DNA of 64,000 bases from Paramoeba atlantica (Eukaryota > Protista > Discosea): NCBI GenBank assembly GCA_977017575.1, contig CDRNVI010000071.1, positions 186,001-250,000 on the forward strand. Direction: 5' to 3'. Numbering within the stretch: the first letter of the stretch is position 1; each line of letters begins with the position of its first letter. The translations under genes were made by a program, and so were the position numbers. Under the pieces are notes generated by a model. The model saw nothing but the letters and a program-made list of their open reading frames with translations. It was not told where the DNA came from and did no database searches. This document shows, piece by piece, positions 4,337 through 38,474 of the stretch.

Positions 4337-7300
4337 TTGTATCATACAGGTAATCCTGCAGAGATTTATGTGGTGAAAACGCGCACTGAACGCGTTTTAG
4401 TCACCTGTTTCTATCCAGCGTCACCAAGAACGTTCTCCTCCATCCAATTTTTGCCATTGCGGTTTTGATATACTATGAAGCTCCCTCTCAGAGCCTTCAC
4501 GGTCATATTGCGCCGGCACTCAGCCACCAGCTCATCATTACCCACAAATAGAGAGTTCAGAGTTCGACCAGCACTGCTTATTTTTCCTCTCGCTCCGACT
4601 TCGAAAACGAGTAGGAAAGTGCTCGGGTTTGTGAGCTTGCGGGAATGGTAGAGATTTGTGTACTTGGCAGTTTTTCGTTCGTGTGCGTAGACAAAATTTT
4701 CCTCCCAGGGGCACGTCAATTCTATAATATACTCCTCCCCGTTGGACAGTTTCACCCACCCATCCGGTCGCAGCTCGGTGTCGAGTTCCGTGAGCCACGG
4801 AGGGGTAGAGCGAAAGTGAGGGAGGTCAAAGTGATATAGACTGGTCCCTTGGAATTTCTGCACAGAGTTTGCGAGGGCTTGTAGCACCATGTTATGTCGC
4901 AGAGTATATCGTCCTTGCTCGAGTGCTTTTCTACACCCGGAGAGAATATGTCGCGCGGTTTGCGTTTCAGTATCGCAGATGGGACACTTGTCGCTTGTGT
5001 GTGTCGATACGCCCCATTTGCGGAGAGACACTCTAGTAGGGAGTGGCGTTTCTGTGAGTACGGAAGCCGTAAATCGTGATAGCGATTCGCTTTTGAGATT
5101 ACATAGGGCGGCAGCGAAGTCCCTCGCGAGGTCTGCTTCCGTCGCTAAGCGGAACCATCTTCCCGCAACTGAAGTGCGCCTTTGCACGGCTTCCGAAAGA
5201 TGCCTCTCATATTCACTGTCGATAAGTCGTCGTACGTTATTGTGAGTTGAACCGAGTATGTCAGTCGGCGGACGAATGTACCCCGCTTTTCTCTTGTTTT
5301 CTTCTCTCCTGATGCGTTCTCGCAGGGCGTGCTGGACATCGGGATCGCGTGATTTCTCCATTTGTTCCACGGCGCTCGCGGTTGAAAGAAGCCATAGTTT
5401 GGATAAGCTCACGAGGTTCCAACCATGCTCGGAGTACAACAGTTCGCTTGTCGCGGATTTTGCTACATTTAACCATTTTCTGATTTCATTTGTAGCGCAT
5501 CGCTGGAGGCGCAGAACGTGGTTAAAAGTCAGACATGAATTGACAACAAAAGAGTAGCGAAGGCGGGAGATAAGGCGGGAGATACCATTATTGTATATCC
5601 AGAGTCGGGCGGGTAGGTCGTGGGCGCTGGAAGATACATGTATGTTGCGTAACCAGGTACGGAGTCGATTGCGTAGCTTTGGGAACAGAATTTTACCATA
5701 CTGGGCACCAGGTGCGAGAGTCATACCCAGGAATGTGCTACCATTATCGCATATTTGAGGAATAGGTGTTGCGTCAATCATTATCTGCGGTCGTCTTGTC
5801 ATGTAGCCTGAGTCTTGAGTCATTGCCATGTGTTGAATCCGACATTTCTTTGCGTTCAATTTCATTCCGATGCCGCCTAGAACTTTGACCAGTACGTTCG
5901 TGGCAATTTGCATTTCCTTTGGTGTGTTCGTGAGTATACTGAGGTCGTCAGCAAAGGCCTTCAGAGAGGTTTCCTTTCCATCCCAAGTGATTCCGTACTG
6001 TGGGCAACTTGAACGGATGAAGCGAAGAACCAATTCCATTGCCAAGTTGAATAAGATCGGCGACAGTGTATCTCCTTGTAATACTCCACGGCCGATCTCG
6101 AGCGACTTCGTAAGGCCTTCAGCACACTTGATTTGAATAGATGCTCCTTTATACAGCGCGCTGATATAGTTAATTAGAATTGGGGAGACACTGGCCCATT
6201 TTAGGGATTGTAACAGTACTGCGTGGGGGATAGATCCGAAAGCGTTCTTGATATCGAATTGTGCCAGTAAGTATTGCCGTTTGTGACGTCGTTGGTGTTC
6301 AAGGAGCTCGCATAAGACTTGTGTATGCTCGACGGTCCCATTCATGTGTGGTAGAAATCCTTTTTGTACTGATGTATCGAGCGCATGAGAATCCAAGGAA
6401 TGTTGAAGGATTCGGTGGCTCAGGATTGAATGGAAAAGTTTCCCTATGCAACTAGTTAAGCTTATCGGTCGCCAATTCTCCATAGTTGATGTAGGACCTC
6501 CTTTGTGTATGAGGCGAGTTACGGCAGATTTCCAGGTGGGGGGACAAACCCCGAATTTAAGGATGTCATTGAATACTTGAGCGATGTGGACAAAGATAGG
6601 GCTACAACGCTTGAGCAGAGCGTTGGATACAGTGTCTGATCCAGGAGCAGCGCCCGAGCGCTTGGAAGATACAGCAGATGCTATCATTTCGGCGTCAATA
6701 TCCGACCATGGTATGTCGATGTCAGGCCGTGGTCCCAAGAACTCGGCGGGGGGTATGCTGTGATTCTCTTCAGGTTTTGACAATGATGCCGCGAAGAAGT
6801 TCTCAACCTCTTGAAGAGGTACTGTAGGGTAAGACGTCTCGGGTTCCTGGATTGGGTCAGTGCGATCTAGGCATTCGCCCGCAGCTGTCCACGGGTTTCT
6901 CTGGAACCGAGTTAATGCCCATCGTCGATCGATTTCCCTCTTCTGTAGATTGGCTTCCTCCACGTACAACTTCAACGCTTTCTCTGCTTCCTTAATTTCT
7001 CCTCGCTGCTTGTTTCTCGCGACCCCCTTCATGAAGGTAAGTGCACGTTTGAGTTGACGAACATGTGTGCGAAGCCTCTTCGTGGTACGTTCGATGGCCA
7101 AGGGCCGCCAAGGGGGGATATTGCCATCTCTACTAACATGAGGTTCCGGGGAAGTGCGTGTATGAGAGAGTTCGTGGTTTACAGCCTGCGTACCGCTCAA
7201 GTTTCCTGTCTCGGATGGCCAGCTAGGGTGATACTGTGGTGATATTATGCTAGCATCGGCAGGAGATGTCCTCGTAAACAAATTCCTGAGTGACCATATT

Positions 7301-8521
7301 CGATTCTGACTGTTTTCTTCGACGATCATGACCCCTGTCTTGCAACATTGGTGTTTGCACTGAGTTTTATTGCTGCATATGTGCCGACACGGGCGACAGT
7401 TGGCCGTGTTTGCTGATATGGCGGACGACGGCGGATGACCGGTTGGCAGTTCCTCATACTGGGCCTCTTCGCTCGGTATGGCATCTGTCGAGACTTGCGG
7501 ATCGGTTTCTATCGATGTGGCTACTGTCGGTGGACTATGTGACCGTGTTAATGGTGACTCCCCGAGGTGCCGTTCTGGTCGAGGATTATCTGTAGCACCC
7601 GTGATGAGGACTCCTATTTTGCAGCACTGGTGCAAACAATTTGTCTTGTCGCGGCACGTATGCTTACAGGGCCTTCTGCCGGGAGCTAGTGAACTGTCTA
7701 TAGCCACGGCTTCCGAAGAGGGAAGAGGGACGCTAGGATGCACAGACCTTTCGGGTTTCACTTTGCAACATACGTGAAGACATGCTGCTTTGTCCCGGCA
7801 TTTATGGGCACAAGGGACACTTGGTTTAGTGGGCGGTAGTTTTGACACCTTGACGGGAGCATCACGGATTCTATATGGCGCGTCGTATGTGACCTCCGGG
7901 CAACGTTGGAGTTGTTCAACGGGTTGGGCCTTACGGGTCACGTGTGATATGCGGAATCGTCGTAAGCCTGGCACGTCACCGCCGCGCAATTTCTTTGTGA
8001 CGGCTTTGCCAAGCGCGTTCGAGGAGGAGTATTCTGTGTCAAGATGCATGTCGGAGTCTGTATAAGCAGAGCTCCAGCTCGTGTGATGAAATGTGCCACT
8101 AAGGTTTCCAATTTCATGGTACTCAACGTACTCGCATGCGTCGTTCTCGATGACATCTTGAGTGGTACACGTTTGTACTATCAGACCATCGCTCCTTTTG
8201 CTTCCCGACTTCAGGGTTTTTCCGAGGGAAGCTTCTGCTGTGTGCGTGCTTGAGAAAAACTCTCGTTCGGTAAGGGTGATGGCTGCGGCGTGCGTGTCGG
8301 GAAAATAGGACCACGAAACGCTATCAGAGGGGCGGATCTTCACTGGCAGCGCACGACTTCGGACGAAGTGAAAGTTCTGGGGGTGTCGCTGCGCGCTGAC
8401 AGGTCCTCGAGGGAGGCCGTCGTGCGCGTGGGGAGCTGGGGGTGTGACATTCGAGACCATGCTCCGAAAGATAAGTTTAGTACAAAGTTAATAAATCAAC
8501 AAGGTACAGAAACTGTATCTT
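4337..8521 (-). mobile_element. Full-length HERO-like RT+RLE non-LTR retrotransposon (copy A) with a 5' spliced-leader fragment
   Basis: Removing 4337-8521 restores the LRR frame (LPESLTYI|YMKCNKLSG). Single long ORF, 36-nt 5' UTR preceded by an SL-like sequence, hairpinned 3' UTR, no clear TSD. Confidence 0.85.
4411..8460 (-). CDS. Non-LTR retrotransposon polyprotein, 1349 aa: 3 Cys/His zinc-binding repeats, RT, CCHC finger, restriction-like endonuclease
   Basis: RT motifs QKGFLPHMNGTVEH, FDIKNAFGS, QGDTLSP, AFADD. CPICDTETQTARHILSGC finger. RLE motifs YTLRHNMVL, RPDGW, IIELTCPWEENFVYAHERK, resembling HERO-clade elements. No stops. Confidence 0.92.
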   Translation of the reverse strand: MVSNVTPPAPHAHDGLPRGPVSAQRHPQNFHFVRSRALPVKIRPSDSVSWSYFPDTHAAAITLTEREFFSSTHTAEASLGKTLKSGSKRSDGLIVQTCTTQDVIENDACEYVEYHEIGNLSGTFHHTSWSSAYTDSDMHLDTEYSSSNALGKAVTKKLRGGDVPGLRRFRISHVTRKAQPVEQLQRCPEVTYDAPYRIRDAPVKVSKLPPTKPSVPCAHKCRDKAACLHVCCKVKPERSVHPSVPLPSSEAVAIDSSLAPGRRPCKHTCRDKTNCLHQCCKIGVLITGATDNPRPERHLGESPLTRSHSPPTVATSIETDPQVSTDAIPSEEAQYEELPTGHPPSSAISANTANCRPCRHICSNKTQCKHQCCKTGVMIVEENSQNRIWSLRNLFTRTSPADASIISPQYHPSWPSETGNLSGTQAVNHELSHTRTSPEPHVSRDGNIPPWRPLAIERTTKRLRTHVRQLKRALTFMKGVARNKQRGEIKEAEKALKLYVEEANLQKREIDRRWALTRFQRNPWTAAGECLDRTDPIQEPETSYPTVPLQEVENFFAASLSKPEENHSIPPAEFLGPRPDIDIPWSDIDAEMIASAVSSKRSGAAPGSDTVSNALLKRCSPIFVHIAQVFNDILKFGVCPPTWKSAVTRLIHKGGPTSTMENWRPISLTSCIGKLFHSILSHRILQHSLDSHALDTSVQKGFLPHMNGTVEHTQVLCELLEHQRRHKRQYLLAQFDIKNAFGSIPHAVLLQSLKWASVSPILINYISALYKGASIQIKCAEGLTKSLEIGRGVLQGDTLSPILFNLAMELVLRFIRSSCPQYGITWDGKETSLKAFADDLSILTNTPKEMQIATNVLVKVLGGIGMKLNAKKCRIQHMAMTQDSGYMTRRPQIMIDATPIPQICDNGSTFLGMTLAPGAQYGKILFPKLRNRLRTWLRNIHVSSSAHDLPARLWIYNNGISRLISRLRYSFVVNSCLTFNHVLRLQRCATNEIRKWLNVAKSATSELLYSEHGWNLVSLSKLWLLSTASAVEQMEKSRDPDVQHALRERIRREENKRKAGYIRPPTDILGSTHNNVRRLIDSEYERHLSEAVQRRTSVAGRWFRLATEADLARDFAAALCNLKSESLSRFTASVLTETPLPTRVSLRKWGVSTHTSDKCPICDTETQTARHILSGCRKALEQGRYTLRHNMVLQALANSVQKFQGTSLYHFDLPHFRSTPPWLTELDTELRPDGWVKLSNGEEYIIELTCPWEENFVYAHERKTAKYTNLYHSRKLTNPSTFLLVFEVGARGKISSAGRTLNSLFVGNDELVAECRRNMTVKALRGSFIVYQNRNGKNWMEENVLGDAG

Positions 8522-8524
8522 TAT
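8497..8524 (-). other. Spliced-leader exon-like sequence joined to the 5' UTR of retroelement A
   Basis: ATAAAGATACAGTTTCTGTACCTTGTTG contains the euglenozoan SL core ACAGTTTCTGTAC and ends in TTG like trypanosomatid SLs. It is followed by non-GT sequence, as in a trans-spliced mRNA. Confidence 0.8.
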
Positions 8525-8590
8525 GTAAGTTAGACTTTCTGGGAGATGGCAGAGATCTACAGTTCGCACAAACTGATTGTCAAAAATATA
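8522..8590 (-). pseudogene. One 23-codon LRR repeat stranded between retroelements B and A
   Basis: Translates YIFDNQFVRTVDLCHLPESLTYI, in register with the repeat resuming at 4336. Confidence 0.75.
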
Positions 8591-9180
8591 TTAATCATGC
8601 AGTTATACTGCAGAGATTAGCCCTAGGTAGGTAAGCACGCCCAAAACGTGCTACTTACTCGGGGATTACCACTTTATTGGAAGCCTTGCACCTCCCACGT
8701 GGGGTTGTCGCGGTGCTGGTAGATAACAAAGCTTCCCCGGAGTGCCCGCTGGACCATTCTCTCCCTGCACTCGGAGGCAAGGCTCTTGCATCCTCCGAAG
8801 AGAGAGTTCAGCGCGCGGGTTGTGGCGTTTAACTTTCCTCTTGCCCGAACTTCAAAAACCAGGTGGAAGGTGGAAGGGTTTTTTAATTTCCTCTGGTTAT
8901 AGATGTGAGAGTATTTACGAATCTTACGCTCGTGTGCGTCCGTGAAGTTTTCTTCCCAAGGGGAAGTCAGCTCAATGATGTATTCCGACCCGTTGTGCAA
9001 CTTCACCCACCCGTCTGGTCTCAATTCAGTTTGTTGCGAGAGCCAGGCGGGAGGGTTCCTGTGGAGGTACAGGTCGAAGTGCGAATGGGCCGCTGATGGT
9101 GATGCTGCTACGGTGTCCGCTAGTGTGAGCAGGATAAGGTCGTGTCGGTAAGTGAATCGTCCCTGACTGAGCGCAATTGG
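8591..9180 (-). mobile_element. 5'-truncated HERO-like element (copy B): endonuclease C-terminus plus 3' UTR
   Basis: Translates ALSQGRFTYRHDLIL...TELRPDGWVKLHNGSEYIIELTSPWEENFTDAHERK, homologous to A. The 3' UTR has the shared terminal hairpin. Confidence 0.85.
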
Positions 9181-9337
9181 GCACCCAAAAAGTTAGCCTA
9201 TGGTCACTTATCGTGACGGGGGGTTTATATACACTTACACTTATAATTTATATACACATATTTGCTACTTTCGCTTATAAGGTCAGTAAAAAAACCTTTC
9301 GAATGTCTCGATTTTTTTTCTTTTGTATACAGCCATT

Positions 9338-9836
9338 CACGTTGTTTATCATGCGCTCTTTGGCGCAGAGATAATCCCCTTAATGCGACGGCCGATATCA
9401 TCGGCACATAATCCGCCCACAACGGATGTCGCCAAAGGGGGTTCGACACGGACTCGGTCGGTAGAGGTGGTCCAGGCAACTCACCACCTCTTTACGCAGC
9501 CGGAGGGGCGCACTGCAACCGACCGCTGCCTCGCGATAATGCGAGGCAGAGTCACGCCCAGTGGTCCTCAAGGGAGGCCACCATGGCGCATAGCTCCCGG
9601 GAAGAGACAGGCGCGAGAAGAAGAAAGCCGGGGAGGGAAGAAAACTCACTCAAGGAGTGAGCCGGGGAGGGGTGAAAAGTCGGAAGTACGTCCCCTACTT
9701 CCACGACAAGAGGGACAGTCCCTGCTAGCCGTCAGCCGGAAACGGGCATTTAAAAGGAAAATGTATGCCCGTTTCCGGGAAAAGAAAGGAAGGGCTAGCA
9801 AAATGTACCAACAAGGTACAGAAACTGTATCTTTAT
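9338..9836 (-). mobile_element. SL-headed, HERO-tailed non-autonomous retroelement (candidate SINE), 499 bp
   Basis: Interrupts one arm of a Tc1 TIR; the intact arm at ~11915-11950 shows the empty site. The 5' end is SL 28 nt + GTAC, the body is a run of hairpins, and the 3' end TATCTC-TGCGC-caaaga-GCGCA-TGAT matches the HERO 3' motif. Confidence 0.75.
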
Positions 9837-10062
9837 ATTAATTATCACTGTTGCGCTGGTAATGTGTGCTAGTAGTGTCGGCATGAGTGTCACCTAATAG
9901 TACCCATAGGTAGTTCACCTCAGTTCGTTCTGCCCAAGAATTAAGAATGAATTTAAAAAAAAAGCATTCGAAAGATTTTTTTGCTACCTAACATAAATAA
10001 AATATAGCATCAAAAAAAAGATAAAAAAGAATTGCCCAAGAGAGTATATGCCCACAAATTTA

Positions 10063-10930
10063 ATACTTTGTATTCCCCCACGCGCCTTCAACACTGCCTT
10101 CATGCGGGCAGGCATGCTGTCCACCTGGGTACGACATACTGAGGCCGGTATGTTCGCCCACTCCTTCTTAACCCTCTCCCACAACTCTCGGACCCCACTT
10201 GGCGGATCATCGTGGTCCGCAAGGCGCCGCTTGAGCTCCCCCAAAACATTCTCGATGGGGTTTAAGTCAGGGGACTGCGGGGGCCACCGCATGACTTCAA
10301 ACCCGGTACCCTGGAGGTGCCGTTGCGCACACCGGCTGGTATGCTTGGGGTCGCTATCCTGTTGGGAGATAACTTTTCCAGGATCCAAGCCCATGCCATC
10401 AATTGATGGGACAAAATTTTCCTGTAAAATCTCGATGTACTGCTCTGCATTCAAGTTCCCTTGAACTAGACGCACATGTCTCACACCACTTCGGGACATA
10501 CACGCCCAAATCATTACATGACCCCCTCCATATTTGACCGTAGGGATCACCCCCTTTTCCCCCAGTTCCTCCCCTGGGGTCCCCCATGTCCATGACTCCC
10601 CCCCGTCTCAAAGCGCCAGATCTTGGTCTCGTCCGACCACACTACTGGCTCTCAATCATGGACTGTCCAGTGCTCATGGGCAGTAGCGTAGTCCATCCGA
10701 AGCTTTCTATGTCGCTTGGACAAGTACGGCTTTCGGACACGCTTCCTTCCCTTGTGTCCGAAGCGTTTCATCGAAACGCGGATGGATTGTGGGACGACAT
10801 CCACAACACCCTCCTGGCGGAGTTGAGAGGAAACCTCGCGCGCAGACTTACCCGAAAACACAAGTCGTCGCAGCGCGTCGTGCGCACGACTCGGAAATCT
10901 TGCGAGGGTGACCCCTCTTTAGCCTGCGAG
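10063..10930 (-). pseudogene. Tc1 DD34E transposase, broken by stop/frameshift
   Basis: HTH segment AREVSSQL...RKPYLSKRHRKLR; catalytic part VKYGGGHVMIWACMS, QQDSDPKH, WPPQSPDLNPIEN. 34 residues lie between the second D and E. Confidence 0.88.
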
Positions 10931-10993
10931 TAGCAGGTCTTTCTGCCTTTAATACTTTAGAAACTGTAGATATGCTTAGATTTAAATTACCAG

Positions 10994-11214
10994 AAATCTA
11001 ACTCATCGAAAACCCGCTATCATAAAGCTCCGAAATGCGCGTTTGTAAGTACCGTGGTGTGGACCTCACACAGAGTGCAAAAATTAATCAAGAAAGTAAT
11101 AGTGTAAATTTAAATTAATCCAAAGTTTCTTCTTTTCTACGAGGCCCACGCCACGGTACTTACAAACGCGAATTTCGGAGCTTTATGATAGCGGGTTTTC
11201 GATGAGTTAGATTT
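10994..11214. repeat. Inverted repeat with ~74-bp arms
   Basis: 10994-11067 (aaatctaactcatcgaaaacccgctatcataaagctccgaaat...) is the near-perfect reverse complement of 11141-11214. Confidence 0.8.
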
Positions 11215-11700
11215 TTTTTTGCTTTCGAAAATCGAGCGCAGGGAAGTGGTAGAGTATGCCGCAGCGATAATTTTCCACCCCCCCCCTGATACGCGCAGGA
11301 GGGGTCCGACAAGGTTAAAATTTCTGAAATTTTTGGGGCAACCAAAAATTTTTTTTTGTTTCAAAAAAAAGTAAAAATATTATTTTTCCAAAATCGACTC
11401 CTAAAACGTATTTGGAGAGTTTGGGACCTCAGCTACCATTCTACGACGTTTTTTCCGACAGATTCGACTCCTGCCCCTACTGGTAAAGCATCAAAAACGG
11501 CACAAAATCGGGTTAAATTTTCGCAAAAATCGAGCTTTTTCACCCAAAAAAATAGGTTATTCATGATCTTTTGGCAATTTTTCTTTTATGGGCTCTTCGT
11601 TAAACGCGGTGGTAGTTTTCAACGCAAAGCGCGCAGCATGAGTGACTTCTAAGTTGAAAATAACCGCCGCGTTTAACGAAGAGCCTAAAAAAGAAATATC
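11215..11700 (+). mobile_element. Partial R1 family copy
   Basis: aaaatcgagcgcagggaagtggtag block and terminal hairpin at ~11580-11695. Confidence 0.7.
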
Positions 11701-12289
11701 TATTTATGGGCATATATTCTCCCGGGCAATTCTTTTTTATCTTTTTTTGATGCAATATTTTATTAATGTTAGGTAGCAAAAAAACCTTTCGAATGCTATT
11801 TTTTTTTAAATTTATTCTTAATTCTTGGGCAGAACGAACTGAGGTGAACTATCTGTGGGTACTATTAGGTGACACTCATGCCTACACTACACTCATGCCT
11901 ACTAGCACACATTACCAGCGCAACAGTGATAATTAATCAATGGCTGTATACAAAAGAAAAAAAATTCGAAACATTCGAACGGTTTTTTTACTGACCTTAT
12001 ATACACTTATATTATTTACACTTATTTGAAGGGTTTTGCAATTTTTAGACCCCCCGCAGCATCTGATTTACCCCCCTGTATACACTTGTGTATACAGATA
12101 ATTATGTGTATATAAACCAGGGGGGTTTATAACCAGGGGGGGTTACTTGAAAGACAATTACTGTTGGTGAAGTCTGTTGTATGCCGTCAGTTAACTGTGA
12201 ATACCGTCTATTGCACTTTACTGCACGTTTTTCGTAGCTTTGCTTTTTTTAGGCTGTCGACCTGGGGCAGAGCAAGTTTTTTCGACCAC

Positions 12290-12460
12290 TGTCAGAAATT
12301 TTCTACTACTAAATTTTTTTTTTCAATTTTGGACCACCGGAGCCCCCTTTTATAAATTTTTCTTCTATTATATTACTGTGTTCCTCTTTATATTTTCACT
12401 GTTTTTGTTCACTTTTTTTCAATAATCGAGGGTAGAGCGGTAGTTATGCAACCACCGCAA
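12290..12460 (-). repeat. R1 terminal fragment
   Basis: Reverse complement of attgcggtggttg...actaccgctctaccctcgattattg plus the downstream A-rich block. Confidence 0.65.
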
Positions 12461-12618
12461 TCCTCCCATTGCTACTTATGGTAATGTACAAAAACTCCCC
12501 TTTTCAATATTTTCAGAAAGTTCTTCACTATGACATTCGAAATTATTTATTACACGTCAGAAAATACAATAATGCACAATAACTACCTCTTAAAAGAAAA
12601 TTGAACTCAAATCGCTTT

Positions 12619-13281
12619 CTAATTGTCTCCTGGTAAGATCAACACTTGCTTTATTTTCGTTCGCGATCGAACGCGAAATGTGACAAGCGATGGTGGAAGT
12701 TCGTCAATGACTACGTTTCCCGAAAGATTTCGATTTCCCGTTAAACTAAGCACTTGTAGACCGATGGGAAGTTTTGAAAAACTAACCCATCCGTCGAATG
12801 CGTTCTTATCCAATTTTAGCTCTTTCATACTCAGAGGCAATTTATCTAATTGAAGCTCCCCGGTAAACTGATTTTGATGAAGATCCAGTGTTATAATTTC
12901 AGGAGGCATTAAATCCAACGGCAAAGTTCCGGTAAGCTTGTTCAAGGAAAGGTCAATAAATCGCAACGTATGAGGCACGTGGACCCAAGAAGGAGGTCCT
13001 TCCAATTCAACCCAAGACCAATTTAACGTGTCCAATTTTCCATGCGGATTGCATTTTACAAGTGGCCATTCGCAGGCAGGATATGTTGTGTTCCATTGCG
13101 GAAGACAATGTTTGAGCTTTTCTACAAAGTTATGGAGTTCGTATTCCTGTGGCAAAGAAGCGCCACGCACTTTGGCAGGTCGATTGCGTGGCACGTCCTC
13201 AGTTGCACCGTGCAGTAGCGCTCCTGTCATAATAATAATAATGAAAGAAGACACAATCACTAAATGATTAAAGAGCAACAA
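12619..13281 (-). CDS. Short leucine-rich-repeat protein (LRRNT cap + LRRs)
   Basis: Hydrophobic N-terminus, W...CEWPLVKC cap, repeats LDLHQNQFTGELQLDKLP. The true start is uncertain. Confidence 0.85.
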   Translation of the reverse strand: MLLFNHLVIVSSFIIIIMTGALLHGATEDVPRNRPAKVRGASLPQEYELHNFVEKLKHCLPQWNTTYPACEWPLVKCNPHGKLDTLNWSWVELEGPPSWVHVPHTLRFIDLSLNKLTGTLPLDLMPPEIITLDLHQNQFTGELQLDKLPLSMKELKLDKNAFDGWVSFSKLPIGLQVLSLTGNRNLSGNVVIDELPPSLVTFRVRSRTKIKQVLILPGDN

Positions 13282-13415
13282 TAGAGGGGCTGCGGGTGCG
13301 CATCACCGAACCCGCGCTTTGCATTTGAGGTCGAACGAGGCCTTTTTTAGCCAATAAAAATTACTATAACCCCCATAATACATACATAATTCTTTTACAT
13401 TATCCCCCATTTTAT

Positions 13416-13630
13416 ATGATGAGCCCTGTTGAGAGCAACGAAGAGTTCACCTCGCGTATGAAGGTCACATCTGCCAGAGATGATGACGTATACGACGTCA
13501 TTGTCGCATCGCTTACGCGCACCTTCACGAAGTGAAAGATTCTTCCCCCAGCGCTCGTTATCACCGAGGAGGAGTTGGGAGTCATGGTGGAAGAATGCAT
13601 GAGGCGCGTATCGCGCACGATGGACAGCTA
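13416..13630 (+). pseudogene. Short coding-like stretch with an internal TGA
   Basis: Hand translation MMSPVESNEEFTSRMKVTSARDDDVYDVIVASLTRTFTK*KILPPALVITEEELGVMVEECMRRVSRTMDS*. GC-richer than its flanks; no family recognised. Confidence 0.3.
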
Positions 13631-13869
13631 AACCGGGGGGCGGATTATTATTACAGTGTAATAGGCCTATTACACTGTAAAAATAAGGTGAAAGATGCTA
13701 AATGGTAATAATAATGTGAAAGCAGGTTATTGTTACGATCTCTCGAGAAAAACTTCAAAGTACGAAAAAAAGAGGAATATTTGCTCCTAAAAATAAGAAA
13801 AGTGCCTATCCAAACTCTTTTTGAATGGGTCTTCACGAAGGAAAAGAGGAAAAAAACAAGATTTTTAAC

Positions 13870-14500: not shown

Positions 14501-14572
14501 AGCGCCGAGGACACCTTCTCCTGGATTGTCTTCCACGAGGGGTCTGCTTCCTTGCAGGGTCGACGCGTGATC

Positions 14573-18457: not shown

Positions 18458-18511
18458 TTATACGGCGGGCCCTTCGAGGCGGTGCAGACCCGGTTGGTTC
18501 CTTCAGAGCAT

Positions 18512-20260: not shown

Positions 20261-20263
20261 AAT

Positions 20264-27137: not shown

Positions 27138-27169
27138 TCTACTTAGCTACATGTACATGTATATTACTA

Positions 27170-27788: not shown

Positions 27789-29837
27789 CTAGCTGTCATT
27801 CGCCGCACCTGATGACTTGACACGACTTGGTGAATAAGTCGGATTGAGCACTTTGGTTGCGCGATCCGACATGTTCTTTCGACCCTTTTTCTTTGTTCCC
27901 TCCGTGGGATTGGATGACTCACTTCCGCTGCCGCTTTCCACGGTGCCAACACCTTCAGATATTCCTCTCTCGGCCCGTTTTTTGAAAGAATTCCCCCGAG
28001 GAGGGGACAACACATCGTGACTTACGTCGGCGGACCCTTTTACGGGTGTAGCGGAGGGCGTGGAGTTACTTGGCGTGTCTTTCGTGGGGGTCGTGGTCGA
28101 GTGCTGTTGCGGCATTGTATCAGAAGATGGGGCCGCACGTTTCGGGCTAACAAGTTCAGGTGAAAGATTACCCTCCTTTGCGACCTCCCGCTTCTGTTGC
28201 TCTGCCTCTCCAGCAGGTGTGGATTCCGGTGCCAGATTAGCCGTCGGAGGAGTGATAGTTGCGGTGGAGGGCCCCGTTGGGGTAGTCGTGGGAGTATTAG
28301 TTGCGGGCGTCGTAGGGTTGCTGCCGGAGACGTTTGCTGTGCTCTGCCGCGTCCTAGTCGGACGCAGGGGCCCGTTCACATACGCCTCCTGCATAAGTGA
28401 GGCTATATCAGGTCGATTAGTGGGATTCGGGTCCAGACACTTTCGGATAAACTCCTTTGCATCGGCACTCACCACTGGGCGCACGGGAAAATCCACCTCC
28501 CGAGCTTTACTCATGACTCCACCCGTCCATATTTGTTTCTGGGACATTCCCTCACCAAATGGGCGTTTCCCGAACAACATTTGATAGAATACCACGCCCA
28601 GGGCCCAGACATCCACCTTGGTGGAAATCCGGGGAAGCGACGTGGTGTTGAAGCACTCCGGTGGGAGATACCAATAAGTCCCTGTACCCTGGGAGGTGAG
28701 ATCTATTTCATCTCGCCCACTTTCCTCACCTATAATTTTACATAATCCAAAGTCAGTGATTTTAATATCCAAACAGTTCGGGAGATCCGTCGCGAACAGG
28801 ATGTTCGCAGGTTTTAGGTCATAGTGGATAATACGCTCTTTGTGATCCGCCAAGTAGCGCAACCCGTGGAGGAGTTGAATCAAAATGTATTTGGCATCCA
28901 CCTCCCGGAGGTTACCCCACTTCTTAAGATGTGTGTCAAGGTCGGGACCGGAGCTGTACTCCATGGCACTGATAAACGCATTGTCGTCAAGGACCTCCAC
29001 GTCGTGAAGCTGTATCACTCGAGGGTGCTCGAGCTGCATGTGCACCTCACACTCGCGCTTGGCGTGACGGATGTAATTCCGACGACGGTCTTCGGACCAA
29101 TCTGTACTCACTTGGTGAAACTTCACTGCCACTGGGCTGCACCTTACAATGTCGTACGCCTTCCACACCTCACTGAACCCTCCGCGGCCCAGAAGAGACA
29201 TCATCACATAGCGATCTAACAAAACTTCTAGGGTGGCGTACTTGCTGCGGTCCTCGTCATAAATCCTGCGCATCTCCTTGAGCAGCACCAGCTTGTCGCG
29301 CTCCAGCTCCTCCAGCTTGTCCTTTAGCACGACGTCCTCCCTCCGAGAGGCACTACCACTCTCCCCTCGGTACTGCTTGAACAGGCGATTTTGAGCCACT
29401 GCATCCTTGTATCGCTGTCCCCAGACCCAGGTTTCGCCGCTCTCGTTTGATACTGTGGGTTGCAATATCATATACCCCACGGAGTACTGCGCATCGCACA
29501 GCTTCCTTCGAGCCAAGCTGCGCTCATGGCGAGCTGCTGTGACCATCGTGTCCCGGATTCGAGCCCGGCACTCGCTGGCGTGTTCCTCAGAGGCCTCATA
29601 CATGGAACGGAGCTGAGAGAGGGCCGAGGTGGCCTCCTGGAGCTGTTGTTGTAGTCGCGCGGCTTGGTCTGTGCGAGAAGCTAACTCCTTTCGTAGAACA
29701 TCGTCGGAAGTAGAGAAGGATAATACACTCTGTTTCAGCTTCTTCAAAGGCTTGCTTTCGTTGCTCCCCTCATCCAGTGAAGAAATGCCGGCGATGGGCG
29801 GTGGGGGAAGATAGGTGGCATTACTGTCATCTTCCAT
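27789..29837 (-). CDS. TLK: Tousled-like serine/threonine kinase
   Basis: Coiled-coil region then RYVMMSLLGRGGFSEVWKAYD, HAKRECEVH, IIHYDLKPANILF, KITDFGL, LTSQGTGTYWYLPPECF, ISTKVDVW. Confidence 0.92.
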   Translation of the reverse strand: MEDDSNATYLPPPPIAGISSLDEGSNESKPLKKLKQSVLSFSTSDDVLRKELASRTDQAARLQQQLQEATSALSQLRSMYEASEEHASECRARIRDTMVTAARHERSLARRKLCDAQYSVGYMILQPTVSNESGETWVWGQRYKDAVAQNRLFKQYRGESGSASRREDVVLKDKLEELERDKLVLLKEMRRIYDEDRSKYATLEVLLDRYVMMSLLGRGGFSEVWKAYDIVRCSPVAVKFHQVSTDWSEDRRRNYIRHAKRECEVHMQLEHPRVIQLHDVEVLDDNAFISAMEYSSGPDLDTHLKKWGNLREVDAKYILIQLLHGLRYLADHKERIIHYDLKPANILFATDLPNCLDIKITDFGLCKIIGEESGRDEIDLTSQGTGTYWYLPPECFNTTSLPRISTKVDVWALGVVFYQMLFGKRPFGEGMSQKQIWTGGVMSKAREVDFPVRPVVSADAKEFIRKCLDPNPTNRPDIASLMQEAYVNGPLRPTRTRQSTANVSGSNPTTPATNTPTTTPTGPSTATITPPTANLAPESTPAGEAEQQKREVAKEGNLSPELVSPKRAAPSSDTMPQQHSTTTPTKDTPSNSTPSATPVKGSADVSHDVLSPPRGNSFKKRAERGISEGVGTVESGSGSESSNPTEGTKKKGRKNMSDRATKVLNPTYSPSRVKSSGAANDS

Positions 29838-31573
29838 TTTAAACCTTTGAACACTTACAAATAGCGTTTTTTTAGATTTTAAAGTTTAATTAGGAAAACA
29901 GTAAACAAAGAAGTAAAAAAAGAATTTGATAATACTGTCCAGGTCAGATTAAGTCCAGACCACAGAGAGTACCGTATGATCTACCTGTATGATCTGGCCT
30001 GTATAAAATATAAGCTGGCCGGTGTTTATACACCGGCCTGTATTTATTACCCGTATTTACGTCGGTAAATTTTGTTTATTAATACTTGATACTTGGGGCG
30101 CAATGGGCTACGGTACGATGACGGCACACGTGCACCCAAGTTACGGATATGCCCCTTCTCAAAAGACTATTTCCTTCTTCGTACATTGCCGTGTAATAAC
30201 CGTAATCAGTTTTCATGTTGAACCTCATATCAATACACACAAAGCTTTTAGGCAGCCCAACATACATGTATGATTCCCACAAACGAATACAATTCATAAT
30301 TCCAGATTATGAAAACGAAATATTTTAACGTTAAGAAATAGATGCGCATGTTGCAGTTTAGTGGTCTTTCACTTACCGTCGTAGCTATGATGCGTGCCTA
30401 CCACTTCGAATTTATTTCGACCACGTAGGCGGATGACACATAGTTGTTCAGGAAGTTCACGTACATCAATCGTGCCTTCTAAGTTGTTGTCTGCCAAATA
30501 AATTTCTTTCAAAGATGTTGGAAGACCCTTCAACGAGACTGTACCGGAAAAGTGATTTATGTTCAACCAGAGCCAACTCAATTTCGGGGGCAAGTGTTGA
30601 AGGTTTAATGTGCCAGAAAGCTCGTTTCGATTTAAGCACAACTGCGTAAGTCCAGTGGGAAGTGTAGTAAGATCAATACCCCCTGAAAACAAGTTGCCGT
30701 TTAACCACAGGACCGAAAGTACTGGCGGGAGAACAGAAGTGTCAATAGGACCTTCTAGCCTATTAGATTGCAATTTTAGGCTGACCACATTCTCAGGCAA
30801 AAACGCCCAAGTAATGTTACCGGATAAACTAAGCGACATCCATTCTAGACGAATCATACTTTCTGTGTCCGCGTGTACGTTAAACCACTTTTTAATAGGA
30901 GTGTCGGACTTCCAGGTTACATGAGCGTTTTTCACGTTCTGTAAGAAGAAGCTTAGCTTGGTTTCTGGACTCATACACGAAGCACGTACCCTTCCCAGCC
31001 TTGTAGTGGTATGTGGCGCGTCATCCGCAGTAGAAAAGCGAGGTAACATCATGTAACAAATTATTATTATTACCCAGTTAAAGAAATTAAAATTTAGGAG
31101 GACTCGCAACTCCACATAAGACGCATCAAAATAACAAATAAAGACAATTTTTTCGCTGTTCCCTTAAGATCCGATTCTCTTGCCATCAAGAGATAGCATC
31201 GAGAGATAGCATCGAGAGATAGCTGAACACAACCTCCGGGCGTTATCCCATTCTATCACAACACCGCCCCCTACACTCCTAGCCATTCAGCTTTGCCATC
31301 GCTTGCTTCACCTTTTTAATTTCCATCTCCGTTCGTTCTCGCGAGCGCGTGATTTCCAGCACCGCCCGTCGAGCCTGTGCCAACCCCTGCATCTCAGCTT
31401 CGTGCCTTCTGCTGTACTCCTGCTGCAGGGCGGCGTCTCGCTCATGGATCGCCTTGGCCTCATACGCCAGCCGCCCCATCTCCGCTCTGCGCGTGGCTAT
31501 TTGCGCCCGCAGCGTGGCGCGCTCCTGCTCGAACTCCGCTATCTCCTCTTCGCACAGCCGACTTGAGTTTTCC
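29718..31573. repeat. Segmental duplication copy 1 (TLK 5' end, LRR, 3' half of coiled-coil gene)
   Basis: Colinear with 50859-53521 apart from the MITE at 51026-51840. Confidence 0.9.
30369..31115 (-). CDS. Short LRR protein, paralog of 52333-53079
   Basis: 248 aa; repeats LWLNGNLFSGGIDLTTLP; nearly identical to the second copy. Confidence 0.88.
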   Translation of the reverse strand: MELRVLLNFNFFNWVIIIICYMMLPRFSTADDAPHTTTRLGRVRASCMSPETKLSFFLQNVKNAHVTWKSDTPIKKWFNVHADTESMIRLEWMSLSLSGNITWAFLPENVVSLKLQSNRLEGPIDTSVLPPVLSVLWLNGNLFSGGIDLTTLPTGLTQLCLNRNELSGTLNLQHLPPKLSWLWLNINHFSGTVSLKGLPTSLKEIYLADNNLEGTIDVRELPEQLCVIRLRGRNKFEVVGTHHSYDGK

Positions 31574-31575
31574 AC
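31279..31575 (-). pseudogene. 3' fragment of the coiled-coil gene 53226-54002
   Basis: Matches the last 98 codons of 53226-54002. Identity stops abruptly at ~31573 and the upstream part is absent. Confidence 0.8.
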
Positions 31576-31688
31576 TTCTTGACTCTTACCAGAGCTCGAT
31601 CCTTCGCCTTGTCGTGGCGCTCTGGCTTACCATCCTAAAGGGTAAACCAAGAAAGGATTAAAAGAATTTAAAAATTGGAGTGACACTA

Positions 31689-33066
31689 AATTAGTGTTCG
31701 GAGTGACTGACAAGTGAGATTGCAAGGACGAATGCAAGATTGGAAAGAATGCATAGATTGAGAGAATACGATTGTAAAGAGTGGAGACTGTGCAGCTAAC
31801 CGGTGCCATCTCGTGCCGTCTTGTGCCAATTCATGCCAACCAGAACTGGGAATAATGAGACTTTTTTTAGGGATACAGAAATCACATGCATTTTTTCATA
31901 CCCTGTACCTCAATGCCCCCTCCACGGAATAATTAGGCCTTGGTGACATCGCGCGGGCCCTCACTATTTCATTTTCTTAATAAGTACGTAAGTAATGAGT
32001 GCTCATAGTTGTAACGATCTTTTGCTGCTACGTAACGCTCTTATCAACTTCTAAGAAACGGGGTAAACTATATATATATATATATACATGTATATACATG
32101 TATATACTCAAATGTATTTCATCATAACTTGCTAAAGGACTAACGAAGGGGACGTCCGCAACCGCCCCATTCGCCAGTCTCCTTCGAGGACAGTTCAATG
32201 CCACCAAGATGACAAGCTTCATTTCGGGAGTCATGCGAGGCAACCCAGGGCAAAGTGGACGAGGGAGATACCAATAGTTTAGCTGCGGCAGTTTCTAAAG
32301 GAAAAACGACATCTCTACCGTTTTAGGCGCTTGCCTTCATGCCATAAGGGAGATACCGTTTTTCCTTTGGAAACTGCCGCACCTAAACTATTGGTATCTC
32401 CCTCGTCCACTTTGCCCTGGGTTACATAGGAAAAACATGTTAGTAAAATGTTAGTAGTAAAATGTTAAAATTAGTGTTCGGAGTGACTGACAAGTGAGAT
32501 TGCAAGGACGAATGCAAGATTGGAAAGAATGCATAGATTGAGAGAATACGATTGTAAAGAGTGGAGACTGTGCAGCTAACCGGTGCCATCTCGTGCCGTC
32601 TTGTGCCAATTCATGCCAACTCATGCCAATTCGTGCCAACTCATGCCAACCAGAACTGGGAATAATGAGACTTTTTTTAGGGATACAGAAATCACATGCA
32701 TTTTTTCATACCCTGTACCTCAATGCCCCCTCCACGGAATAATTAGGCCTTGGTGACATCGCGCGGGCCCTCACTATTTCATTTTCTTAATAAGTACGTA
32801 AGTAATGAGTGCTCATAATTGTAACGATCTTTTGCTGCTACGTAACGCTCTTATCAACTTCTAAGAAACGGGGTAAACTATATATATATATACATGTATA
32901 TACATGTATATACTCAAATGTATTTCATCATAGCTTGCTAAAGGACTAACGAAGGGGACGTCCGCAACCGCCCCATTCGCCAGTCTCCTTCGAGGACAGT
33001 TCAATGCCACCAAGATGACAAGCTTCATTTCGGGAGTCATGCGAGGCAACCCAGGGCAAAGTGGAC
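31689..33066. repeat. Tandem direct repeat of a ~0.6-kb non-coding block (31689-32262 and 32468-33066), each leading into a palindromic element
   Basis: Both units start aattagtgttcggagtgactgacaag and end gaggcaacccagggcaaagtggac. They contain atgccaac 10-11-bp repeats and (TA)n. Confidence 0.85.
32243..32422. repeat. ~180-bp palindromic element (GAGGGAGATAC family)
   Basis: acccagggcaaagtggacgagggagatacc... / ...ggtatctccctcgtccactttgccctgggt, followed by tacatag. Confidence 0.85.
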
Positions 33067-35484
33067 TTTGCCCAGCAGACTTATCCATAGACACCGATCA
33101 GCATACCACACCAGACATCGGACACTTCGAAGAGGTCAGGGATCCGGAGCTCCCGACCGTAAATCCGCCCTCACTAGGATACATGGATGACGCCACACAC
33201 CACACACAAACATCAACCAATGAAGTCAATTATCGCCCCTGTCGGCACATATGTAGCAACAAAGCTCAGTGCAAGCATCGATGTTGCAAAAATGGTGTCA
33301 TACAACCTAGCACGGAGGTTGTACTCCGCGAACCCGTCCGTACCTCTCCAGACCTGCACACCAGCAATGACAACACCCCTGCCCCAACAGCGCCTCGTCG
33401 CAACTGCGCTCATAAATGTAAGGACAAGGCAACATGTAAACATCAATGCTGCCAGAAAGGAGTTCTCCTCAAAGTCGCTGAAGTAGCGTACTCTGCCATA
33501 TGCTGGACCACGAGAAATATACTGTGCCCTGCAATGGGTGATGCGGAACGCGCCGCAAAAGCTTCACTACCGCCCCCTCCACGCGCAACAACCTACCCCC
33601 CAGTTCACACCAACCCCTCGAATCGCTCGAGTCCAATACTGAGCCCTGTGCGGAATGCACCACTTGTCCACGCCCCGCAACATGATTCCCCTTCTGTACG
33701 CCGCTCCTCACCTTCTTTACCCCTTGTGCAGTCCGCAACAGATCCCACGCCTCTGCCCTTACCTTTACCTCCCCCACCAGAAGGAAACTGCGAACACACG
33801 ATATTGCAGCGCATCCCTCGTGTCCGGCAAGTCCCGGCTACCCGACCTCTCCCTGAACTGCAGAATCTACTCGAAACATTCCGCACAATAAATGGAGGTC
33901 GCGTTCTAGTCCGTTTCACAGAGGAACAGTGGGAGAGTATTATTGCGAAGATCGAGGAACGCTGCAACTCGTATATCCACCTGGCGCGAAACAAAGAGGA
34001 CGCCCTGTCGCAAGCTGAAATACTCTCAGCAATCCTCGCTGTAACTGCATTCGAGGCCGCACGGGAAAACGATCCGACGCACGGCTTTCTTATACGGACC
34101 AGAACTGGCAGAGCCCGAAGAAACTCACGACCCTTAGCCATTGAACGCACAGTGAAAGTACTCAGTCAACACGTTCGACAACTTAAACGTGCGCTAACGT
34201 TCATGAAGGGTCCTGCGTGAAACAAGCAACGAGGGGAAATAAAGGAAGCCGAAAAGGCACTAAAGCAGTACATGGAAGAATCCAGTATGCAGAGGAAAGA
34301 AATCGATCGACGGTGGGCTCTTACGCGATTCCAGCGAAATCCCTGGACAGCCGCGGGCGAATGCTTAGATCGCGTCGACCCATCTACCTCAGAAACTGAG
34401 ACGTCCTACCCTACAGTTCCTGTACAGGAGGTTGAAAGATTCTTTGTGGGCTCAATGTCTAGACCAGAAGAGATACACAAGATTCCTCCCGCAGAATTTA
34501 CGAAACCAATTCCCCTTGATGAGATGCAATGGTCAGATATTGACTCAGACATGATCGCAGCAGCCGTCGCATCCAAACGCTCTGGGGCTGCCCCAGGCTC
34601 GGACACTGTATCGAACGCGCTGCTAAAGCGCTGCGCCCCTGTCTTTACTCACATGGCACAGGTGTTTAATGATGTCCTAAAATTTGGTGTATGCCCTCCA
34701 ACCTGGAAAACTGCGGTCACTCGACTTATCCACAAAGGGGGCCCCACCTCAAGTATGGAAAACTGGCGGCCGATAAGCTTGACTAGCTGCATTGGGAAGC
34801 TTTTCCACTCAATCCTCAGTCACCGTATCCTTCAGCATTCCCTGGATTCCAATGCCCTGGACACAACAATACAAAAAGGCTTCTTGCCGCATATGAATGG
34901 GACAGTTGAGCACACCCAGGTCCTTTGCGAGCTCCTCGAGCACCAGCGGCGCCACAAAAGGCAATACGTGCTTGCCCAGTTTGATATCAAAAACGCGTTT
35001 GGATCCATACCCCATACAATTTTATTTCAGGCCTTAAAATGGGCGCGCGTCTCACCGATCCTCATTAACTACATCAAAGCGCTGTACGAACGAGCGTCTA
35101 TGCAAATTAAATGTGCAGAAGGACTCACGAAGTCTATTGAGATAGGCCGTGGCGTTTTGCAGGGAGATACGCTTTCGCCTATTTTATTCAACTTGGCGAT
35201 GGAGCTAGTTCTGCGTTTTGTCCGTTCAAGTTGCCCCGAATACGGGATCACGTGGAATGCGAAAGAATTTTTTCTAAAAGCCTTCGCAGATGACCTCACT
35301 ATTCTGACAAATACCCCCCAGGAAATGCAGAATGCTACAAACGCACTCGTCAAAGTTCTAAGCGATATTGGGATGAAACTAAACGTGAAAAAATGCCGGC
35401 TGCAACACATGGCGATGACGCAAGACTCTGGATATATGACACGCCGACCACAGATCATGATCGGCACGTCACCTATCCCACATA

Positions 35485-37044
35485 CAGGGGTGAAAACCTC
35501 GTGGTGGGGGGGGTCTAAAATTCGTAAAAATTATCCAATTTTGGAAAGTAATAGCGCATTCGAGAGCTCTCACAGAGTTGTATGTTTTAGCACTATTTGC
35601 GGCCTGTGACTCAACATGAAACGATGAGACAAAAAAAATCATGATTTTTTTTCTTGCCCAAATTTACGTTTTTTCAGTTTTTAGCTGTTTTTCAGTCAAT
35701 ATTAGCACTATATGCCCCAGAAACGGATTCGTTCCCGAACCTCACGTGGTGTACTCAGCGACAGGTCCTATTCCTCCCCCGCACGGGTGATACCAAGTCA
35801 CCGTATGCTTCTTGTCTCAGATTATCTTGAGACAGGGTCCTATTCTCGGACAGCCCAAAACTTCGGCGTCCACGAAAATACAGTAAAATGTCTTGTGATA
35901 CGCTATGAGAACACTGGAGACGTGGAAAGCTCTCCTATTTCACGCCCATCTCCTGTCAGTACCCCTGCGCTGCACGAAGCAGCTATCCGCCTCATTGATG
36001 AGGGATACCGTGACCTCCCGTACGGGATTGAGAACTGGTGTGCACTCCATAGAGTTGTGCTTTCTCTTGGATTTCAGTGTTCAAGACCAACTTTGGTTAA
36101 CGCCATGAAGAGCCATGGTATGATCATGCAAACTTTAAAAAGAAAGCCCGCACTGACCGATGAACACAAGAGGAAACGAGTGCATTTTTGTTCTGAGATG
36201 CTCACTTGGTCAGATACCCAACTGAGACAAATTGTTTTCTGCGATGAGAAGAAGTTCACTTGCGGTAGGGGACGAAACAAAATTACTTACCTTTGCCGGA
36301 AGACTGACCCCGCCAAGGAACAGCAGGGAGAGCTAGAACCTTGGTATGGAGGGAACGGCGTCATGGTGTGGATGGGGGTCAGTTTAAATCATGGATTTCA
36401 TCTACACATTTTTCCCTCCCACGACCCTTCCGGCCGAAAAGTAACTGTAACAGGGGATGTTTTCAATGACGCCATGAAGAAGCGCAAAGGACTTTTAAAT
36501 TATTTGAGGCGCCACCCATCTGGGGTCGTTGCAATGAATAATTGTCCTGTTCATAATTCTGCGCGAACAACCTTTCGCAACGAAGGTATTAATGTACTCT
36601 CTTGGCCTGCAAAATCCCCCGATTTAAACACCATTGAAAACCTTTGGGGGACCATGGACAGGATCAAAAATGATCTTCGACCCAAGAATCGGGCTGAATT
36701 AGTATCGGCCATTGAGACAGCGTTCGAAAGATTACAATCAGAACGCAAGCAAGAATGTATTAACACGATGAGCAGTTTCCGCAAGCGTTGTCGCATCGTT
36801 ATTGAGCGAAACGGGTCTTCCTGTGGGTATTAAGGGTAATTTTTGACCATTTTTTACAGTTTTTCAAATTTGCAAATCGTGTTTTTGACCCTTCCATCAA
36901 AGGGGGGTACCCCCCTAACCCCCGCAAACTGCCTATCTTAAAACATACAACTCTGCGAGAGCTCTCGAACGCGCTATTATTTTCCAAAATTGGACAAATT
37001 TTACGAATTTTAGACCCCCCCCCACCATGGGATTTTCACCCCTG
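35485..37044 (+). mobile_element. Tc1/mariner element with ~105-bp TIRs and TA TSD, inserted in the RT of copy C
   Basis: TA|caggggtgaaaa ... ttttcacccctg|TA. Removal restores PIPHICDNCSTFLGMTLAPG (copy A: PIPQICDNGSTFLGMTLAPG). Confidence 0.92.
35712..36833 (+). CDS. Tc1-like transposase; second catalytic Asp appears replaced by Asn
   Basis: N-terminal HTH, VFCDEKKF, VAMNNCPVH (expected xQDNA), WPAKSPDLNTIENLW. 32 residues lie between this N and E. Confidence 0.85.
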   Translation: MPQKRIRSRTSRGVLSDRSYSSPARVIPSHRMLLVSDYLETGSYSRTAQNFGVHENTVKCLVIRYENTGDVESSPISRPSPVSTPALHEAAIRLIDEGYRDLPYGIENWCALHRVVLSLGFQCSRPTLVNAMKSHGMIMQTLKRKPALTDEHKRKRVHFCSEMLTWSDTQLRQIVFCDEKKFTCGRGRNKITYLCRKTDPAKEQQGELEPWYGGNGVMVWMGVSLNHGFHLHIFPSHDPSGRKVTVTGDVFNDAMKKRKGLLNYLRRHPSGVVAMNNCPVHNSARTTFRNEGINVLSWPAKSPDLNTIENLWGTMDRIKNDLRPKNRAELVSAIETAFERLQSERKQECINTMSSFRKRCRIVIERNGSSCGY

Positions 37045-38474
37045 TATATGTGATAATTGTAGCACATTTTTAGGCATGACGCTCGCACCCGGTGCTCAAC
37101 AAGGCAAGACACTCTTTCTAAAACTACGAACCCGTCTGCGAGCCTGGTTGCGTAATATATCTTCCAGCGCACATGACCTTCCCGCCCGCCTGTGGATATA
37201 CAATAACGGCATCATCTCTCGTCTGCGGTATTCCTTCGTCGTGAACTCATGCCTTACCTTCAATCACGTACTTCGTCTACAGCGATGCGCCACACGCGAA
37301 ATTCGGAAATGGTTAAACGTAGCGAAATCAGCAACTAGTGAGCTGCTCTATTCAGAGCATGGCTGGAATCTCATGAGTCTGTCAAAACTTTGGCTTCTTT
37401 CCACTGTGGGGACAATGGAACAAATGGATAAATCGCGTGATCCCGAGGTCCAGCACGCTTTACGTGAGCGCATCAGGCGAGAAGCGAACAAAAGGAGAGC
37501 AGGATACATTCGCCCGCCGACGGATATGCACAGTACAAGCCATAGTAACGTCCGAAGACTCCTTGGAAGCGAATACGAACGACACCTCACGGAAGCCGTC
37601 CAACGGCGTACTGCCGTAGCAGGACGATGGTTCAGAATCGCAACGGAAGCAGACCTTGCGAGAGACTCCGCCGCCGCCCTATGCAACCTCAAGAGTGAAT
37701 CGCTTTCGCGGTTCACATCCTCAGTGCTTACCGAGACGCCGCTCCCAACCAGGGCATCTCTTCGTAGGTGGGGCGTATCGACACATGCGAGCGATAAATG
37801 TCCCATCTGTGACACCGAGACACAAACTACGCGGCATATTCTATCTGGTTGTAGGAAGTCACTCGAACAAGGGAGGTATACCCTACGGCATAACATGGTA
37901 CTACAGGCATTAGCGAACTCCGTACAACGATTCTCCTCCACTAGTCAATGTCACTTCGATCTCCCCCACTTCCGCTCCACCCCCGCGTGGCTCACGAACC
38001 TTGATACTGAGCTACGTCCTGACGGATGGGTGAAACTATCTAACGGAGAAGAATACATTATAGAACTTACCTGCCCTTGGGAGGAGAACTTTGAGTTCGC
38101 ACACGAGCGCAAAATAGAAAAGTACACGAGTTTATATCACTCTAGAAAACTCGACCATCCTAACACATTCCTACTCGTCTTCGAGGTGGGAGCGAGAGGC
38201 AAACTGCATATGTCGGCCCGAACGCTCAACTCTCTCTTCATGGGAAATGAAGAAGCGGTTGCAGTGTGTCGCCGAAATATGACGACTAGCGCTCTCCGGG
38301 GAAGTTTCATAATTTTCCAGCACCGCGAGAACAAACAGTGGATGGAGGTTAGTTCTGGGGAGTGAGTCGCTGACTGTCAGGTGATTTCAACGCGTTTTGT
38401 GCGCGTAATATGGAACTCCCATATTCACCGTCTAATCTCTGTAGAATATTTTCTACATGATAACATACGAGGCA

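Follow-up and report, generated by a model that had tools for sequence, protein, structure and literature searches.

How does the reverse transcriptase (RT) of a long interspersed element (LINE) find the end of its own template? This question is raised by a 64,000-nucleotide (nt) stretch of DNA (positions 186,001 to 250,000 of contig CDRNVI010000071.1, assembly GCA_977017575.1, filed under Paramoeba atlantica), hereafter the window, in which three LINE copies (A, B and C) and a non-autonomous short interspersed element (SINE) end in the same type of RNA motif. To our knowledge, the details of template RNA recognition have been worked out for no more than a handful of R2 and L2-clade elements, and R2-type enzymes are under development for RNA-templated gene insertion. 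Our analysis showed that the entire short 3' untranslated region (3'UTR) is one RNA module of about 70-100 nt. It is well supported that the folded 3' structure is real, selected on the sense strand, terminal, and common to LINEs and SINEs. Judging from its position and conservation, the module is probably the signal by which the template is recognised and target-primed reverse transcription is initiated, which would be a known kind of signal found here in a new group. The elements and the parts of their modules are as follows.

4411-8460, minus strand: single, intact open reading frame (ORF) of copy A, 1349 aa, in the order RT, CCHC knuckle, restriction-like endonuclease (RLE)
4337-4405, minus strand: 3' RNA module of copy A, with a tail of at most 4 nt, its end set by the frame of a leucine-rich repeat (LRR) gene
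4401-4405 and 4372-4376, minus strand: enclosing helix of copy A, GGTGA with TCACC
4376-4398, minus strand: upstream hairpin of copy A, loop TTCAGTG at 4384-4390
4341-4366, minus strand: terminal hairpin of copy A, AATCTC-TGCAGG-atta-CCTGTA-TGAT
8493-8524, minus strand: spliced-leader (SL) head at the 5' end of copy A, starting ATAAAGATACAG...
8591-9192, minus strand: copy B, a 5'-truncated LINE, of which the C-terminal ~167 aa remain, 57% identical to A (tblastn)
8591-8664, minus strand: 3' RNA module of copy B, upstream hairpin AGCACG/CGTGCT, loop TTTTGGG
8594-8618, minus strand: terminal hairpin of copy B, AATCTC-TGCAG(T)-ata-(A)CTGCA-TGAT
9338-9836, minus strand: the non-autonomous SINE, 499 bp, consisting of leader head, intron-like GTACATTTT..., body and LINE-type 3' module
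9338-9441, minus strand: 3' RNA module of the SINE, with a 10-nt tail
SINE module, minus strand: enclosing helix, CCCCTT..GCGA with TCGC..AAGGGG
SINE module, minus strand: upstream hairpin, ATCCG/CGGAT, loop TTGTGGG
SINE module, minus strand: third hairpin, GCCGAT/ATCGGC
9348-9373, minus strand: terminal hairpin of the SINE, TATCTC-TGCGC-caaaga-GCGCA-TGAT
About 33015-38465, plus strand: copy C, a 5'-truncated and broken LINE, ~75% identical to A in nucleotides and 83% in amino acids
35712-36833: ORF of the Tc1/mariner element that splits copy C
38380-38465, plus strand: 3' RNA module of copy C, enclosing helix GGTGA/TCACC
Copy C module, plus strand: upstream hairpin, ACGCG/CGCGT, loop TTTTGTG
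Copy C module, plus strand: third hairpin, ATATGG/CCATAT
38434-38461, plus strand: terminal hairpin of copy C, AATCTC-TGTAGAA-tatt-TTCTACA-TGAT

A first-pass annotation of the window had placed four such terminal motifs, each with a hairpin upstream. Direct reading of the sequence confirmed all four positions, with ends differing by 1-2 nt only, and the upstream hairpins proved as described, with the loops listed above. A gapped pattern of the flanks matched three times in the window, against 0.04 expected; the motif of copy A, ending TATGAT, is the fourth. To enlarge the sample, the last 750 residues of A served as the query of a word search, which found nine relatives, 36-75% identical to A and all from one ENA assembly. 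The resulting alignment contained 19 motif copies, four from the window and fifteen from the nine related contigs of that public assembly (contig labels beginning with L below). Twelve LINE tails, belonging to proteins 36-83% identical to A, were located through the position of the ORF. In every one of them (12/12) the module directly followed the stop codon, and the motif lay within 70-155 nt of the end of the ORF. Their stems were highly diverse, including TGCAG/CTGTA, TAGTGAT/ATCACTA, TATCT/AGATA, TGCTATT/AATAGTA, TACAGG/CCTGTA, TACT/AGTA and others.

Pairing was kept throughout this diversity. Across the 19 copies, 93.4% of cells in the terminal hairpin were paired and compensatory changes occurred in five of the six pairs, with 29 double-change cells; none of 500 shuffles reached the observed score, and pairing fell to 21-56% when the 3' partner was slid by 1-3 columns. 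The earlier statement that the stems differ while pairing is kept, made on four copies, was therefore borne out, and covariation was present in the larger alignment. The closing U-A pair of the hairpin is invariant. Among the five core pairs, six G-U/U-G cells and one mismatch were observed; on the complementary strand these G-U cells would be A-C mismatches, which indicates that selection acts on the sense RNA. RNAalifold predicted the terminal hairpin independently and added two invariant lower pairs (U-A and C-G) under a bulged U. These lower pairs use the conserved CUC/UGA flanks and so account for their conservation. Above them stand the bulged U, the invariant U-A pair and a stem of 4-6 bp of free sequence. 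A lower AUC/GAU helix had also been considered and was rejected, as it is not kept in the copies with TGAA, and was replaced by the UC/GA pairs with the bulged U.

The remaining parts of the module were likewise conserved as structure. The upstream hairpin has four core pairs, one of which appears as CG, GC, AU and UA with zero mismatches, and is closed by C-G and G-C under a conserved 7-nt loop, UYNNRKG. Around it, an enclosing helix of unrelated sequences was found in 17 of 17 copies. When tested per sequence as duplex energy against shuffles, it gave a mean z of -2.7, with p<=0.01 in 10 of the 17, and it also appeared in most single-sequence minimum free energy folds. MAFFT and RNAalifold applied to the full module recovered both hairpins and missed the enclosing helix because its position varies. 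A third hairpin is optional and sometimes accompanies the enclosing helix; the terminal hairpin stands a few unpaired bases further on. In one related element, L003, 62 nt of the 3'UTR are duplicated in tandem (6511-6634); both units end AAATCTC, and the terminal hairpin follows the second unit only. This element sits inside a (TG)n microsatellite.

The module is not restricted to autonomous elements. The SINE of the window contains no ORF, and its 25-nt head is identical to that of A (second site at 9809-9833). Further copies of this type were found in L004, L007, L008 and L009, and two more SINE families, ending at L009 15552 and L004 13671, were present on related contigs. All that these three ORF-less families have in common with the LINEs is the leader head and the 3' module. 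Sharing of this kind between autonomous and ORF-less elements is a classic hallmark of a tail that acts in cis and is recognised by a LINE RT. Truncated copies retain the module as well, namely B, C and a fragment at L009 21083-21117. The latter, a truncated SINE tail, was the sole new match when a covariance model of the terminal hairpin (R1) was run over the window and nine related loci (204 kb) besides the 19 training copies; such a scan for further passengers thus added one tail in L009 and none in the window beyond the four known copies.

The ends of the elements could be read from their junctions. Contigs without the SINE, seen in three sequencing runs, join 9337 to 9837, which defines the SINE as a discrete 499-bp insertion at 9338-9836, ending 10 nt after TGAT. 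Copies A and B both lie within one LRR gene on the same strand (window 3900-4340 and 8525-8593) and break it at an identical register of successive 24-residue LRR repeats, immediately ahead of TAT-AT(G/T); the reading frame of the gene leaves at most 4 nt (A) and at most 3 nt (B) after TGAT. The SINE-1 copies share a tail close to CATCAAAA and diverge after it. A poly(A) tail was found in none of the 19 copies. The first-pass annotation had put the ends 3-12 nt past the motif with no poly(A), in agreement with these junctions.

By its sequence, the protein predicted from copy A is that of an R2-group RLE LINE. It matched Pfam RVT_1 (E=8.8e-31) and zf-RVT, and its residues 588-1296 aligned with the solved R2 proteins 9nl3 and 9dou at E ~1e-34, including the CCHC and PD..E..K region; the single ORF with RT, then CCHC, then a PD-(D/E)xK-type endonuclease is the arrangement that defines the group. 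Outside the source genome, the nearest named protein matches came from fish and molluscs and are labelled "uncharacterized protein". HERO, the label that the first-pass annotation gave to the copies, is a clade known mainly from animals and offers a further, tentative comparison. It has been described with non-specific or microsatellite-directed insertion (PMC4640811). The present family has an RLE domain, and the few insertions seen are dispersed, some of them in microsatellites, which may correspond to that description; HERO membership is defined by RT phylogeny with reference elements. The surroundings at these few sites, (AT)n after L001, (TG)n flanking L003 on either side, (ATC)4 after L005 and ATATAT in the LRR gene for A and B, would fit a preference for simple repeats.

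Among known systems, R2 elements use a structured 3'UTR as template handle, lack poly(A), are frequently 5'-truncated and have deleted non-autonomous derivatives. The present family shares the R2 protein architecture of RT, CCHC and RLE. In contrast, its module is much shorter than classical R2 3'UTRs and has no Rfam match, its elements lie outside ribosomal DNA, and their 5' ends carry the spliced leader. Specifically, the whole window gave no match to Rfam at gathering thresholds, the R2 element covariance model included, and at E<=1 the region 4300-9900 returned only a chance-level mir-885 and nothing relevant. A second parallel is given by stringent LINEs, which need a 3' stem-loop that is bound by their own ORF2 protein and is common to partner SINEs (PMC4176376, PMC1636434). 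Eel UnaL2/UnaSINE1 and zebrafish ZfL2 resemble the present elements in having a stem-loop at the extreme 3' end, common to LINE and ORF-less SINEs, with no need for poly(A) (PMC1636434, PMC4176376). They are similar also in that pairing is what is maintained in the stem, that specificity resides (in the present elements, probably) in the loop and in a bulge or mismatch, and that short or repeat-like tails follow. A conserved extreme-3' stem-loop was indeed present in 12/12 of our LINE tails, and three SINE families carry the full module. However, UnaL2 and ZfL2 are of the apurinic/apyrimidinic endonuclease type, belong to the L2 clade and use an ORF2, whereas the present family is a single-ORF RLE family of the R2 group in a kinetoplastid-like protist; its module comprises three or four helices and is unlike their tails in sequence, and its partner SINEs are headed by SL RNA, not by tRNA or 5S. 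Finally, the trypanosomatid elements CRE, SLACS and CZAR are likewise of RLE type, live in Euglenozoa and are associated with leader sequence, but they interrupt the leader gene and have leader on both sides, whereas here the leader is the element's own 5' end. Insertion into the SL exon was not observed, the flanks being an LRR gene, microsatellites and transposons, and the empty site of the SINE holds no leader. Targeting of the SL gene in the CRE/SLACS geometry had been considered, as SINE heads follow LINE tails by 7-8 nt, and was rejected on the strength of this empty site and the non-leader flanks.

Taken together, the terminal position, the selected structure, the invariant unpaired nucleotides, and the retention in ORF-less partners and truncated copies argue for a template handle. 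We infer that the element's protein would bind the module on its own transcript, and binding would position the RNA 3' end at the nicked target, where target-primed reverse transcription would start; the copied RNA would end 3-10 nt after UGA(U/A), without poly(A), and leader-headed SINEs, carrying a copy of the module, could be mobilised in trans. Contact would most likely be made through the upstream hairpin's loop and through the invariant nucleotides that are bulged or single-stranded, with the covarying stems as scaffold. Loops of the upstream hairpin in SINEs correspond to those of individual LINE lineages, such as TCGTATG to L008 and TTGAATG to L009. A wider proposal, which we put forward tentatively and regard as rather doubtful, is that radiating RLE LINE lineages of a deep-branching kinetoplastid-like protist use one compact modular 3' RNA handle in which the upstream loop is the lineage "address", and that SL-RNA-derived SINEs captured this handle repeatedly.

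Other explanations of the module were weighed against recognition of the template. A 3'-end formation or stability element similar to the histone-type stem-loop, which would stand in for poly(A) and shield or mark the end of the transcript without specific recognition by the RT, would account for the terminal position, the missing poly(A) and the selection for structure in the sense RNA, and a non-polyadenylated template does need some device (in kinetoplastids, polyadenylation coupled to trans-splicing normally determines where an mRNA ends). Yet SINEs with unrelated bodies keep the entire module, including loop and bulge, as expected of a handle for trans-mobilisation, and we consider end formation by itself unlikely; the two roles are, moreover, mutually compatible. 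We assign a similarly small chance to the terminal hairpin of ~30 nt being the only functional part and the upstream hairpins dispensable lineage baggage. This hairpin shows the strongest covariation and the only fully invariant flanks, but conservation extends to the loop and closing pairs of the upstream hairpin, whose stem covaries, 17/17 copies have the enclosing helix despite unrelated sequences, and all three SINE families retain the upstream parts. In addition, other contigs carry different sequence in place of parts of the window SINE, and nearly all of what is replaced is upstream of the module start at 9441, the nearest joint being at 9432. The first-pass annotation had proposed a cis-acting recognition signal of ~30 nt: the selected terminal structure common to LINEs and SINEs supports the signal, its recognition by the protein is probable, and the size is not supported, as the conserved unit is the module of 70-100 nt, whole in all three SINE families.

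The inverted repeat exists in the DNA too, where it might serve as a fold-back of the cDNA for priming the second strand, or as an endonuclease site. Action at this level is very improbable, since G-U is tolerated on the sense strand only (six cases in core pairs), the free stem sequence is unlike a nuclease site, and the hairpin bears no relation to the targets seen, which are (TA)n-like sites, microsatellites and other transposons. Least credible of all is a structure without function, alike among copies through common descent and palindromes arisen by chance. The copies are all related and share a single genome, but the stems differ nearly everywhere and are still paired, with up to 4-6 pair types per pair, the slid controls collapse, and three distinct helices persist in elements whose proteins are 36-83% identical to A.

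Several points weigh against the reading of the module as a template handle. All copies came from one genome or assembly, and the shuffle statistics are therefore inflated by relatedness; the slid-partner control and the variety of pair types nevertheless argue against relatedness as the explanation. The seven non-LINE copies were obtained by a scan that required a stem, which introduces ascertainment, and the two invariant lower pairs carry no covariation information. The 3' end of the RNA was deduced from DNA junctions, as the probable RNA run covers the leader only. Furthermore, two distant relatives were examined, L010 (32% identical) and L011 (Mercenaria, 26% identical), and both lacked the motif.

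For work on template recognition, the module of this family is short, has clear limits and covaries richly; its 12 LINE lineages and three SINE families amount to natural swap experiments, and the intact 1349-aa ORF of copy A could be expressed. If a module of 75-95 nt or less suffices in trans, it would be among the smallest natural template tags for an R2-type enzyme. The family also documents a LINE/SINE partnership in a protist group with almost unexplored transposon biology.

The 5' ends of these elements are shared as well. The head common to A and the SINE is a real spliced leader, as first annotated: it contains the kinetoplastid SL core CAGTTTCTGTAC, and in the probable RNA run (X5) it stands at the ends of contigs, fused to unrelated sequences. 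Of the other three runs no type is recorded; in them the summed leader depth was far above the depth of the LINE body. A literature search on the exact leader sequence found no paper. A housekeeping GTPase on a related contig was closest to a prokinetoplastid transcriptome entry and to Trypanosoma (44-47% identity), which points to a kinetoplastid-like euglenozoan genome. In two of the three SINE families the head is followed by GTAC..., resembling the SL RNA intron, which suggests that these SINEs were built from a whole SL RNA plus a LINE tail; we know of no earlier description of a SINE head derived from SL RNA. Every full-length LINE of any lineage, and every SINE, starts at the same leader nucleotide (ATAAAGATACAG...). 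The leader-headed SINEs and the leader starts are located as follows.

Window 9338-9836: SINE with leader head
L004 12595-13168 and 13241-13680: SINEs with leader heads
L009 14986-15560: SINE with leader head
Window 8493-8524 and 9809-9836: leader starts
L001 1363, L002 1614, L003 1916, L004 7701, L005 279, L008 2743 and L009 9333: leader starts

Contigs of the runs read ...TAACG just upstream of the head, and the first few leader nucleotides are missing from the elements. The leader ends in TTG, and a daughter copy therefore has no AG acceptor at the leader joint. One idea is that the same 5' boundary is regenerated through a cap-proximal modification that stops the RT. At the 5' junction of L004 (7690-7716) the leader piece ATAAAGAT occurs three times, and at that of L006 (9699-9730) the leader pieces TACTTTGTTG-TACCTTGTTG are found; these repeated pieces look like stuttering at the template end. 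Head-to-tail stacks were also observed, in which a SINE head begins 7-8 nt past the 3' tail of another element (L004 12586-12600 and L009 14977-14990); the stacked head in L009 lacks its first 8 nt. As a conjecture, such stacks could arise by template jumping onto the module of a second RNA, or by repeated use of one site.

Remains of Tc1/mariner-type transposases were found at 35712-36833, within copy C, and at 9984-10550. The latter belong to the repeat that hosts the SINE, other copies of which are without it. The leader head runs into a different 5'UTR (tttttttctcttatctttatcgtta...) at two loci that share it, L002 7238-7257 (minus strand) and L009 9341-9360; this is probably the start of another leader-headed retroelement family.

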